This document shows positions 47,401 to 54,200 of a stretch of DNA of 64,000 bases, piece after piece (position 1 is the stretch's first letter; each line of letters opens with the position of its first letter). The translations under genes were made by a program, and so were the position numbers. The notes beneath the pieces are model-generated. The model was not told where the DNA came from, did no database searches, and saw only the letters and a list, made by a program, of their open reading frames with translations. This DNA is from Heteronotia binoei. Taxonomy: Eukaryota. Where the stretch lies: NCBI RefSeq assembly GCF_032191835.1, contig NC_083227.1, positions 40,424,001 through 40,488,000 on the forward strand. Direction: 5' to 3'.

Positions 47401-49969
47401 ACGTCCTCCTCAGACCAAGAGTTTTCCAAGAGTGAGCACAATTTAGTAGCACACAGAAAGCAAAAGATCTGCTAGCCAGAATTGTAGTACAAGAATTCAG
47501 AAAAGGGGGTCTCGTACTCTCAGTTCAGATACTTTCTCCTGTTCACTCAACTTCTGCTTCAGAACTGTCTCCAGTTTCTTCTTCAGTGGATCCAAGTGAC
47601 CCTGGAGCTTGGCCTTTAAAAAAAAAAAAGAAAGACAAACTTCCTCTTGAATATTAGCATCCATGTTTCTTTAGTGTGCGAATTAGCAAGTAAGGTCTCA
47701 AGTAAGTGCAATACATATTTTTGCATGACTTCTCCCTACATCCATGTGTGGAAGCATAATCTGAATTTCTGAAGTTAAATACACCCGGGGGGGGGGTTCA
47801 CTATCAATAGTGTGAGCAAGCTCAGAATTTTTTAGCCTCTGGCTCACACATTTTTGTCTTAGCTTAGGAAAAATGGCCCCAGAGCAAACTAATTCATGCA
47901 GCAGCCAAATCATTCACTCAACAGTAATACCAGTAGCTCATGAAGTAGAATTTTTGCTCACAAGACTCTACAGCTTAGAGAAAGTATTGGTCACTATCAT
48001 CTTTTAATTCCTGGAAAAACAGATTTACTCCCACTCCTGGAAAAACAGATTTACAGCTACCAAAGTGGCATGCAGCAGTTTTTCCCCAAACCCCTGGATC
48101 ACTCAGCTTCCATTTCAACAGCCAGTACAGACTGCAATTCCTTAGCACTGAGACAAACCCCCACACATACTTTCTTTTTTATACTGATAATTCCTTTGCT
48201 ATCTTTATTGTATTGTTATTATTTCATAGACTGCCTTGAGTAGATCTCTGAAGAAGCAGCATATATATTTACTAACAAAACATACTTTTGCAAAACAATC
48301 AACTCCATTTGATAATGATAATTCCAGTGCATGCTTGTAAATACAACATATGTTACAATGGTATCTTTAATGTATAAATGTGCCTGATTATGCCCGCAAC
48401 TAATGTTCTACAGAGATTATAACATACTACTGAAAAGGCTGATTTTTCAGAGTTCTAGTTTAACATCATAATATACTACTAATCCTACAATGTTTGTACA
48501 AGAATACTTTTAATCAAATCACACACCTCTTTGTTTAGTGCAAAAAACCCCTATGTTATGTAGTTATAATTTTTATTTCCCTTTCCTTTCAAATACACAG
48601 TGGCAAAAATTGAGATCGACATACTAAGTTAAGGCAGAATGCAGCAGTCTGTGCTGCTCTCCCTCTGCCCTTCTGTCTAGCATTGGGTGTTCTTATAATT
48701 TTACTTGTAGAAAACTAAAAAGGATTTGTAGTTAAAATTCCATAAACATGGCTAATGGCATAACTGTACATATGAAATTATGCATTTTATGTTGATACAG
48801 TAGAAAAAATGATAAAGGAAGGACTGCATGTAGCTCCCACTTACCTGAAATTTCCATTTTCCCTAAAAACAAATCCAAACCAATCAACAATGCAAATGGT
48901 TACATTTGTCAGAAAAATTACATTCTACCCGCTCCCTATCACAACCTTCTAGTGAAATCTCATGATACTGGCTGAAGAAACACTCTAACATTCATATTAT
49001 CCCCTCCCCGTTGCTGCTGCTCACCTTGTATTCTTCCACAATTTCCTCAAGAGGCACGAAATTATGGTGCTTATGGCTGCGCGATTTTATGCACACCACA
49101 CAGATCGGCTCCTCATCCTCCTCACAGAAAAGCTTGAGGGGCTCCTGGTGCTTCTCACACAAGACGCGCTCACCTCGCACACCTCTGCCCGCTGCCAAGG
49201 CCGATGACACTCCCAACGCATCCCCTGCCGCCGCCAACTCCACCACCTCAGCTGGAGGGGTTGTGCTCTTGAAGGGCTGAGGATGCATCTGGCGGATGAT
49301 CTGCACCATGTTCGCCAGCTGAAGGTTGGGACGGAAGTTGCGGTGAGGAAAGGTTTTGCGGCACTGTGGGCAGGTGAAAGACTGGCGCGGTGGTGGAGTA
49401 AGAGGGGAGTCTGCCTCGTCCTCCACTGCTTCATCCTCCATCACTTCCTCCTCCTCATTGTAATTATCAAAGAACAGGTCACCCCCCATGGCATCCTCCC
49501 ACGTCTCATCCGACCCAGGATCCTGGTCCCAAAAGTCTCCGTTGACTTCTTCATCCCACGCGATCTCATCATCTTCATCATACCCATCCCGAGATGCATC
49601 GTCGTCGTCTTCTTCCTCAACCATGTCCCCACCATCCAGGTACTCCTCTAAATCATCCTCATCATCACCATCTTCCTCCGGTCCCAAGTCGTCTATCCCT
49701 CCATCATCCACCGCCTCCTCAGAACCAGGCCTGTAGTCACCATCGGAGCCAGACGCTCCTCCATCATCTTCGCCTTCATCTTCCTCATCTGGGCTGTCCT
49801 CGGCAGCGGCACCCCACAACTGAGTGATGCACACGCGGCAGAAGTTGTGGCCGCATCCGATGGACACCGGGTCCGTGAAGTAGTCCAGGCAGATCGCACA
49901 GACAGCCTCCTCGTGGAGGGTGGCCACGGGGTTCAGGAGGCCACCACCTATGGGCCCTGCCGCCGCCAT
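41486..49969 (-). CDS. TRIM41: TRIM41-like E3 ubiquitin ligase, copy B (RING with acidic insert, B-box, coiled coil, PRY-SPRY), 647 aa
   Basis: Exons 49969-49025 (945 bp), 47613-47518 (96), 46564-46334 (231), 44420-44398 (23), 43625-43498 (128), 42006-41486 (521). All are GT-AG, phases are compatible, total 1944 bp and open. [24 protein letters not shown]..acidic insert..[27 protein letters not shown] is TRIM41-diagnostic. AATAAA at 40174-40169. Confidence 0.93.
42384..42594 (+). mobile_element. Squam3-like SINE, specific to the left arm
   Basis: Family match; the empty site attaactatagcaaacctg is present in the right arm (~58930-58950). Confidence 0.85.
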
Positions 49970-50135
49970 GGCCTTCGAAGGTCCTCCACACTGCTGGGAG
50001 GGGACCAACTCACGCCTGCCTGCTCCTCCACCGACGGACCTCTGCTCTACCTAGCAGTCAGCTTTTCTCTCCGTCCTGCTGCTACCACCTCTCTTCGCAC
50101 TCGAACTCCACCCCTCCAGAACGACTTTCCTTCTT

Positions 50136-51079: not shown

Positions 51080-51245
51080 AAGAAGGAAAGTCGTTCTGGA
51101 GGGGTGGAGTTCGAGTGCGAAGAGAGGTGGTAGCAGCAGGACGGAGAGAAAAGCTGACTGCTAGGTAGAGCAGAGGTCCGTCGGTGGAGGAGCAGGCAGG
51201 CGTGAGTTGGTCCCCTCCCAGCAGTGTGGAGGACCTTCGAAGGCC

Positions 51246-54200
51246 ATGGCGGCGGCAGGGCCCATAGGTGGTGGCCTCCTGAACCCCGTGGCCACCCTCC
51301 ACGAGGAGGCTGTCTGTGCGATCTGCCTGGACTACTTCACGGACCCGGTGTCCATCGGATGCGGCCACAACTTCTGCCGCGTGTGCATCACTCAGTTGTG
51401 GGGTGCCGCTGCCGAGGACAGCCCAGATGAGGAAGATGAAGGCGAAGATGATGGAGGAGCGTCTGGCTCCGATGGTGACTACAGGCCTGGTTCTGAGGAG
51501 GCGGTGGATGATGGAGGGATAGACGACTTGGGACCGGAGGAAGATGGTGATGATGAGGATGATTTAGAGGAGTACCTGGATGGTGGGGACATGGTTGAGG
51601 AAGAAGACGACGACGATGCATCTCGGGATGGGTATGATGAAGATGATGAGATCGCGTGGGATGAAGAAGTCAACGGAGACTTTTGGGACCAGGATCCTGG
51701 GTCGGATGAGACGTGGGAGGATGCCATGGGGGGTGACCTGTTCTTTGATAATTACAATGAGGAGGAGGAAGTGATGGAGGATGAAGCAGTGGAGGACGAG
51801 GCAGACTCCCCTCTTACTCCACCACCGCGCCAGTCTTTCACCTGCCCACAGTGCCGCAAAACCTTTCCTCACCGCAACTTCCGTCCCAACCTTCAGCTGG
51901 CGAACATGGTGCAGATCATCCGCCAGATGCATCCTCAGCCCTTCAAGAGCACAACCCCTCCAGCTGAGGTGGTGGAGTTGGCGGCGGCAGGGGATGCGTT
52001 GGGAGTGTCATCGGCCTTGGCAGCGGGCAGAGGTGTGCGAGGTGAGCGCGTCTTGTGTGAGAAGCACCAGGAGCCCCTCAAGCTTTTCTGTGAGGCGGAT
52101 GAGGAGCCGATCTGTGTGGTGTGCAGGGAATCGCACAGCCATAAGCACCATAATGTCGTGCCTCTTGAGGAAATTGTGGAAGAATACAAGGTGAGCAGCA
52201 GCAACGGGAAGGGGATAATGTGAATGATAGAGTATCTCTTAACCAGTATCATGAGATTTCACTAAAAGATTGTGATGGGGTAAGAGTAGGGTGTAACTTT
52301 TCTGAAATATGTTGTAACCATTGATGAGCAGGGTTTGTATTCTAGATTGGTCCAGATTTGTGTTTAGAAAGTGATCCTATGCAGCAGCTTGACAAACTCT
52401 AGTCAGGGATGTTCTGGACTCATCTTGCATTGAGCAGTGGGTTGGACTAGTTGACTTGTATGGCCCCTTCCAACTCTATGATTCTATGAATCTAAAAATT
52501 AAAGTTTCAGATAAAGCAGAGCTACATACAGTGCTTCCTTTCTCATTTTACTATTGCATCAACATAAAATCCATATTTTTGTATGTACAGTTATGCCACT
52601 AGGCATATTTATGGAATTTAAACTACAAATCCTTTTTAGTTTTCTAGAAGTATAATAATGACAACACCCAGCACTAGACAGACAGGCAGAGGGAGAGCAC
52701 CCTGCTCTAGCTCAGTACATTTATTTCACTATTTGCCCCTAAGTATCTGAGTGGAATTGGAAATAAAAATTGAAATTATGTAACAGTGTTTGTACGAACG
52801 ATGTTTTCCACTAAGCATTTGAGAAAAAGGAGAAATAAAAATTGAAACCAGCTAATGCAGTTTTTGTACTAAAGAAAGAAGGGTGTGATTTGATCGGAAG
52901 TAGTCTTGTACAAATGCTGTAGGACTAGTAGCATATTTGGGTGTTAAATTGTAACTGTAAAAATCAGCCTTTTTAGTAGTGTAGTACTTTAATTGCGGAC
53001 ATAATCAGGCACATTTATAGAACAGAGATATCTTTGGAAGATATATTTAAAGTATTTACGAGCATGTGTTGGAATTACCATTGTTATGCTGTTAGTTGAC
53101 TTGCAAAAATGTGTTGTACTTAGTAAACGCATATGCTGTTTCTTCAGAGACCTGCTCACGGTGGTTCATGTAGAAAAACAATGCTATAAAGATGGCCAGA
53201 AGAATTATCATTATTTATAAGATTGGGGGAGGAGTTGAATCCTCAGTACTAATGGAGTGCAGTCTACTGGCTGTCAAAATGAAAGCTGAGCGATTCAGGG
53301 ATTTGAAAACTGCATGCTACTTCAACAGTTGTAAATCTGTTTTTAAAGCTAGGTGGCCAGGAATTAAAAGATTATAGTGACATCCCTCCCTCCCCCCCGC
53401 TTCCTGGTGTATTTAACTTCAAAAGATTCAGATTATGCTTCCACGCATGGATGTAGGGAGAAGTCATGGAAAAAAATATGTATTGCATTTACTTGAGATC
53501 TTACTTGCTAATTCGCACACTAAAGATATATGGATGCTAATATTCAAGGGGAAGTTTCTCTCTCTCTCTCTCTCTCTTTTTTTTTTTAAGGCTAAGCTCC
53601 AGAGTCACTTGGATCCACTGAAGAAGAAACTGGAGACAGTTCTGAAGCAGAAGTCGAGTGAACAGGAGAAAGTAGCTGAACTCAGAGTAGGAGGCCCCTT
53701 TTTCTGAATTCTTGTACTACAATCCTGGCTAGCAGATCTCTTGTTTTCCTTGTGCTCACTAGGAGCTTGGAAAACTCTTAGTCTGAGGAGCAAATGTCAA
53801 GTTTGTACTGTTGTGGTGTATTGTCCTTTGACCTGGTGGGCTTTCCTGTAGGGGTTTGCTTTGCTGGGTAATATTTCCTGAACTGCCTAGGCATGTGTTC
53901 TAAAGAGATGAGCTGAGGTATCACATCTGGTCTTATCTGCCAAGATCAAGAGTCTTGGACTTCATTGCATCTGGGTATTGCATTCTTTTTCTCCCTCTAG
54001 GGGGGAAGTGTAGATGGTTGGGGAAGGCAATGGCAAACCACCCCGTAAAAAGTCTGCTATGAAAATGTCGTGGTGCAACGTCACCCCAGAGTAAAAAATG
54101 ACTGGTACTTGCACAGGGGGACTACCTTTACCTTTTACCAGGCCATACAGAATATTTTCTTAGCTATCATCCAGATTCTGTGGGAGGGGCAGGATACTTC

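Follow-up and report, generated by a model that had tools for sequence, protein, structure and literature searches.

Background

Interlocus and arm-to-arm gene conversion are textbook processes. Among the best comparable systems are the ampliconic palindromes of the primate Y and X chromosomes and head-to-head gene pairs, in which an inverted repeat on one chromosome contains a sharp-edged tract, unchanged in length and far more nearly identical than the age of the duplication would predict. These properties recur in the locus considered here, an inverted pair of TRIM41 genes of Heteronotia binoei. It lies within a stretch of 64,000 nucleotides (nt) of contig NC_083227.1 (assembly GCF_032191835.1, forward strand, positions 40,424,001 to 40,488,000), called the window below and numbered from its first nucleotide. 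In Y-type palindromes, however, the whole arm is homogenised to more than 99.9%. In the TRIM41 pair homogenisation is limited to 1 kb, or about 10% of an arm length of about 10.5 kb, the innermost 200 nt are unconverted and the rest is 86% identical. The likeness to palindromic loci drawn in the first-pass annotation of the window thus holds for the inverted arms and the probable conversion tract, but not for the arms overall, which at 86% are not homogenised.

Within the TRIM family, recombination and conversion signals have been described among the squamate harbiTRIM copies, where they fall in the PRY-SPRY domains of tandem arrays (PMC12262214). Like the pair studied here, harbiTRIMs are squamate TRIM E3-ligase paralogues clustered with vespryn/thaicobrin-like PRY-SPRY genes. 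They exchange the substrate-binding PRY-SPRY domain, whereas in the inverted TRIM41 pair the exon carrying the 5'-untranslated region (5'-UTR), the RING and the acidic loop is concerned and PRY-SPRY is not homogenised. A second parallel is mammalian TRIM52, which arose from the 5' part of TRIM41 (PMC3845644). Again the duplication involved the RING/acidic-loop/B-box part of TRIM41, which duplicates repeatedly. TRIM52 comprises RING and B-box only and evolves alone, in contrast to the present copies, both of which are full-length and very probably keep exon 1 identical by exchange.

Literature searches yielded neither a described TRIM41 palindrome nor a described case of conversion in this gene. 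We regard the locus as a new instance of a known process, distinct in that the ligase end and not the substrate end is homogenised. The case is clear but ordinary and leaves the knowledge of gene conversion and of TRIM41 unchanged. Its value lies in showing partial concerted evolution cleanly and within well-defined bounds: in this pair of vertebrate innate-immunity genes one exon is identical and the rest diverges unevenly.

A block of complete identity in a diverged inverted duplication

The arms, delimited by blastn and by aligning the two halves with MAFFT, lie at about 39749-50321 and 50872-61914 and are each about 10.5 kb long. They are 85.9% identical over 9,677 aligned columns, with 2,907 additional gap columns. 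The two TRIM41 copies are oriented head-to-head with their 5'-ends about 950 nt apart, and at the palindrome centre the arms are without homology over about 500 nt. A dispersed repeat has inserted in the right arm and not in the left, at about 54000-54136 and 56708-56989. These data bear out the description in the first-pass annotation of introns that differ by many substitutions and transposable element insertions.

Inside these arms, 49120-50135 (minus strand) is the exact reverse complement of 51080-52095 (plus strand). The base-by-base comparison gave no mismatch in 1,016 nt, reproducing the coordinates proposed from inspection of the sequence, and the translations of the open reading frames (ORFs) are identical between the copies across the block. 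A repeat search returned a longer inverted pair, 48975-50135 and 51080-52240, of 1,161 nt and 99% identity, in which all 11 mismatches are confined to 48979-49119. At the outer edge the first mismatch is at 49119/52096, followed outward by 92% identity over 145 nt (the same 11 mismatches). At the inner edge identity stops at 50135/51080; the first mismatch is at 50136/51079, and beyond it a 10-nt indel and dense substitutions reduce identity to about 80%. Both flanks are aligned in register, and the replaced tract thus shows no change in length. No third copy of the block was detected in the 64-kb window.

The block consists of about 166 nt of 5'-UTR or upstream sequence and 850 nt of coding sequence (283 codons plus 1 nt), the latter encoding the RING, the acidic loop and the first half of the B-box. 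Its GC content is 0.59 with a CpG observed/expected ratio of 0.62 and a strong GC skew. As the first-pass annotation had stated, the main frame is the same over the first 283 codons, and identity extends to the upstream 166 nt. The five amino-acid differences that it counted in the following 32 codons were also found; they result from six nucleotide differences. Its observation that the acidic insert shares in the identity holds as well, the acidic loop being variable between species and identical between the copies here.

Outside the block, sliding-window identity between the arms ranges from 75 to 95% throughout. The longest exact run between the arms is the 1,016 nt of the block and the next longest is 98 nt. 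In a GENECONV-type test, 2,000 shuffles of the match/mismatch string gave a longest run of 103, and the analytic probability was about 1e-64. Hence exact pairwise alignment, sliding-window identity and the GENECONV-type test, all proposed in the first-pass annotation, place the block far above its flanks.

Very probably, the block is a recent interlocus (non-allelic) gene-conversion tract between the inverted TRIM41 paralogues. The upper 95% bound on its divergence is below 0.3%, compared with 15.8% between the arms, so the last event would fall within about the last 2% of the age of the duplicates. The proposal that arm-to-arm conversion homogenises the RING module agrees with these data as far as recent conversion is concerned, given the sharp edges, the unchanged length, the diverged flanks and a branch at 49120 in the RNA data. 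The term module fits only approximately, since 166 nt of 5'-UTR are included and the tract ends at codon 283/284, inside the B-box (Pfam residues 270-307) and not at a domain border.

Transcripts of both copies and the reality of the block edge

Four runs were placed on 47700-53500, namely the contig sets X1 and X2 and the raw RNA reads X6 and X7 (2026 runs). X1 is labelled 'DNA?' but was treated as cDNA; it covers exon 1 without intron and carries a spliced loose end. Both contig sets contain a left-specific tail contig (X1, 49030-49149, depth 9.4; X2, 49025-49149, depth 7.0) and a right-specific one (X1, 52066-52185, depth 7.0; X2, 52066-52190, depth 7.6). A shared contig starts at 49120 in X1 (depth 14.5) and spans 49120-50124 in X2 (depth 12.9), its depth in each set being approximately the sum of the two tail depths. 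Each tail contig extends 30 nt beyond the first mismatch and stops there, as expected of a graph with k=31 where two sequences merge. Furthermore, a 63-nt loose end of X1 at 49024 reads into exon 2 of the left copy with the left-specific Gly codon. Both copies are thus real and transcribed in independent samples, the left copy is spliced, and independent contigs place the outer edge of the block at exactly the same base. This has practical consequences for annotation and expression work: exon-1 reads are ambiguous between the copies, which can be separated solely by the final 95 nt of that exon and by the exons after it.

Several points weigh against a conversion tract of complete identity. 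The read check consisted of RNA runs and contigs, which cannot phase the block, and Logan contigs may pop bubbles, by which copy-specific single-nucleotide polymorphisms (SNPs) inside it could be hidden. X6 and X7 show right-type tails only, and their reads may derive from one copy. X1 contains two minor variants in the stretch encoding the acidic loop, namely the deletion of 1 nt at 49531 (depth 5.2 versus 13.9) and a SNP near 49560 (6.9 versus 13.9), which could be allelic, copy-specific or errors in low-complexity sequence. GC-biased conversion is unsupported, the GC content at third codon positions of exon 1 being 0.63 compared with 0.80 in the single-copy L001, a 4.3-kb contig from a related species that comprises exons 1-3. 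The direction of transfer, treated below, is inferred. Apart from these points, the deletion at 49531, if real, would shift the frame in about one quarter of the transcripts.

The best surviving alternative, although improbable, is homogenisation during assembly or polishing. The copies would in truth be about 99-99.8% alike in the block, and multi-mapped short-read polishing or consensus calling would have erased a few variants. The GC-rich and low-complexity character of the block and the X1 bubbles at about 49531 and 49560 are in line with such a process, as is the position 49373 and its mirror 51842, where all four runs differ alike from the assembly, by a polishing error or a real variant. 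However, polishing cannot raise 86% identity to 100%, nor can it produce edges that are matched to the base by independent de Bruijn contigs. Even then the underlying near-identity would still need a recent conversion, so the date would be altered but not the mechanism.

That the whole inverted duplication is an assembly artefact, such as a fold-back chimera or a head-to-head join of haplotypes, is very unlikely. Fold-back artefacts are known from long-read assemblies, but they give near-identical arms. Here, divergence between the arms amounts to 14%, indels add up to 2.9 kb and transposable elements have inserted in one arm and not in the other, which is far above haplotype divergence; the copies also differ in protein evolution. 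Both exon-1 tails and the branch at 49120 recur in X1 and X2, two independent RNA data sets, which argues that the palindrome is neither a fold-back nor a haplotype artefact.

Divergence of the exons and purifying selection

The other coding exons are 92.9-96.2% identical between the copies, the PRY-SPRY exons 92.9%. Summed over these exons, the synonymous rate (dS) is 0.17 and the nonsynonymous rate (dN) 0.042, with a dN/dS ratio (omega) of 0.24. At the same rates about 55 differences would be expected in the coding part of the block and none was seen (P about 1e-24). None of about 184 synonymous sites and none of 166 UTR sites differ in the block, compared with a proportion of synonymous differences (pS) of 0.15 in the other exons. 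The acidic loop carries many indels relative to L001 and other squamates and is free in length and sequence between species. Although the RING and B-box residues are highly conserved across amniotes, strong purifying selection alone, acting on this part of exon 1 without sequence exchange, has practically no chance of being the explanation, since it cannot account for identity at synonymous and UTR sites and in a freely varying acidic loop.

A possible mechanism

Under gene conversion, the head-to-head arrangement of the TRIM41 genes on either side of a common CpG-island promoter region would go back to an old inverted duplication, whose arms subsequently diverged until about 86% identity was left. 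One copy may then have suffered a double-strand break in its CpG-island exon 1 or 5'-UTR, which was repaired from the other arm without crossover, by synthesis-dependent strand annealing or double-strand-break repair. Such repair would have replaced 1,016 to about 1,018 nt with no change in length. At the inner edge, the 10-nt indel together with the approximately 80% identical sequence could plausibly have stopped the heteroduplex from extending. Nothing comparable is obvious at the outer edge, where the next 145 nt are 92% identical. A hairpin-type process starting from the palindrome centre is unlikely, because the innermost segments of the arms (50136-50330 and 50860-51079) are not converted.

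The spacer between the two block copies (50136-51079) is a CpG-rich, shared promoter region with a GC content of 0.54 and a CpG observed/expected ratio of 0.87, within which the innermost parts of the arms are about 80% identical. In vertebrates lacking PRDM9-directed hotspots, recombination breaks are thought to concentrate at CpG-island promoters and first exons. For squamates, the locus is a small natural test case for an association of conversion tracts with CpG-island promoters.

A second region of raised identity was observed in an intron. The patch 44759-45008/57269-57019 is 97.6% identical compared with 82-89% in its flanks and includes a 98-nt exact run at 44810/57217. Either a further conversion tract, older or shorter than the first, or a conserved element of the intron may underlie it. 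As a candidate for microexon 4 it was rejected, as no fitting reading frame exists; it is not an exon in any frame.

History of the duplication and probable direction of exchange

The nearest database sequence to the locus is L001, which is about 80% identical and served as outgroup. Outside the block, 2,067 columns, most of them intronic, were well aligned; in these, 139 differences are specific to the left arm, 141 to the right arm and 283 to L001. These counts give the topology ((L,R),L001), so the duplication is younger than the split from L001, at about two thirds of its depth, and the two arms mutate at equal rates. A duplication older than that split, with L001 orthologous to one of the copies, is ruled out by the same site patterns. 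A search for the same palindrome in relatives reached only L001 in the database, which at about 80% is too distant, and Elgaria has a different, tandem duplication of the 5' part.

The protein sequences evolved unevenly. Polarised with seven outgroup proteins, 23 amino-acid changes are derived on the left and 4 on the right, and 7 are ambiguous. Six of the left-derived changes replace Arg by Cys, His or Gln. A faster mutation of the left arm was ruled out as the cause of this excess by the symmetric counts of 139 and 141. The 23 versus 4 derived changes, despite symmetric intron substitutions, identify the right copy as the conserved TRIM41, as judged from sequence comparison. The left copy appears to be under relaxed or altered constraint, though it is open, transcribed and spliced, and its losses of Arg look more like relaxed constraint than shown adaptation. 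The substrate-binding half has diverged, as the first-pass annotation held, but the divergence is one-sided, with nearly all of the amino-acid change on the left copy.

Within the block, 78 of the 79 outgroup-invariant residues are kept and the single change is common to both copies. In the 32-codon tail of the left copy, by comparison, 3 of 23 outgroup-invariant residues are changed on the left alone. It is probable that the right copy was the donor, or else that left-derived variants were purged.

Variation between individuals

The shared contig of X2 differs from the assembly at five sites (49288, 49373, 49951, 49995 and 49996), and X1 differs at 49373 and 50074. In the raw RNA reads X6 and X7, 100% of the reads carry the alternative at 49325, 49373, 49670 and 49802 as well as at the mirrors 51890, 51842, 51545 and 51413. 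The block thus varies between individuals, and no minor allele is visible within X2, X6 or X7 at the 5-6 sites that differ from the assembly, with the proviso that contigs may pop bubbles and that X6 and X7 may represent one copy. Repeated homogenisation predicts variants between individuals without differences within them, and the pattern is suggestive of recurrent conversion. That conversion is recurrent, directional from the conserved right to the diverging left copy, and still ongoing in the population is a tentative extension, which we consider possible but rather less likely than its opposite. If this were the case, the E3-ligase module of the diverging paralogue (5'-UTR, RING and acidic loop) would be continually reset while the coiled-coil and PRY-SPRY exons drift or adapt. 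An antiviral TRIM would then have a natural 'module swap' arrangement, in which the CpG-island promoter and first exon fix the position of the tract.

X6 and X7 also differ from the assembly in the right exon-1 tail, where 52148, 52158 and 52179 make up 3 differences in 95 nt, compared with about 6 per 1,016 nt within the block. The left and right copies do not differ from each other at any of the three sites. The animals behind X6 and X7 seem notably diverged from the assembled animal.

TRIM41 gene structure in the two arms

The first coding exon comprises 315 codons in each arm, of which the last 32 are diverged. It extends from the ATG at 49969 to 49025 (minus strand) on the left and from the ATG at 51246 to 52190 (plus strand) on the right. 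Both assignments are based on Pfam matches to RING and B-box and on TRIM41 homologues, in addition to an RNA contig for the left and RNA contigs for the right copy. Pfam placed zf-C3HC4_4 at residues 24-57 and zf-B_box at residues 270-307, and an acidic insert of about 140 residues separates the RING halves. This predicted arrangement of a RING split by a long acidic loop and followed by B-box 2 is the layout of TRIM41, a class IV TRIM E3 ligase.

Homology searches were made with single exons. In a word-based protein search, the named proteins closest to the query were TRIM41 or TRIM41-like proteins of Varanus, Elgaria and turtles (Chelonia) and TRIM52 of mammals. At 78% identity, the top match came from a Logan contig, the database being without the organism's own protein.

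Tblastn with TRIM41 proteins located exons 2, 3, 5 and 6 without stops in both arms, and ORFs supported them. On the left (minus strand) they map to 47619-47518, 46579-46334, 43627-43496 and 42007-41486, and on the right (plus strand) to about 53585-53686, 55060-55305, 57932-58063 and 59305-59826. The coiled-coil exons and the C-terminal PRY/SPRY exons are open. A pattern search did not find the 23-nt microexon 4. From this exon content, both arms are predicted to carry a complete-looking TRIM41 gene. Beyond the block, the remainder of the left arm (39749-49119, minus strand) contains the exon 1 tail (49119-49025), intron 1 and exons 2, 3, 5 and 6 with their introns and belongs to the fast-evolving copy. 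The remainder of the right arm (52096-61914, plus strand), with the exon 1 tail at 52096-52190 and the same series of exons and introns, belongs to the conserved copy. A search for RACK1, the tail-to-tail neighbour of TRIM41, beside the left copy gave only a weak RACK1-like trace at 37981-38091 (plus strand) with an HTGYL motif and in-frame stops.

A different duplication of the 5' part of TRIM41 was observed in Elgaria multicarinata (CM068556.1; L002:8842-12300 and L002:17716-21192). There, a 3.5-kb segment with the promoter, exon 1 and the start of intron 1 forms a tandem direct duplicate of about 98% identity. The result is a 'TRIM41-like' gene of 456 aa, located upstream of the complete TRIM41. 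This lizard duplication is independent, partial and TRIM52-like.

Promoter element and dispersed repeats

A 77-nt element at 50245-50321 and 50872-50947, about 280-350 nt upstream of each ATG, is 91% identical between the arms. It is also present in the related species (L001:127-213) with 82-86% identity, while the surrounding sequence is not conserved. The element is probably a core promoter element of TRIM41.

The dispersed repeat inserted in the right arm is about 140-300 nt long, and its copies are 85-88% identical to each other. In addition to 54000-54136 and 56708-56989, it occurs at 62507-62799, 17566-17856, 28163-28370 and 14177-14476. Further repeats are marked by very high RNA depth at 47700-48087 and 52356-52549.

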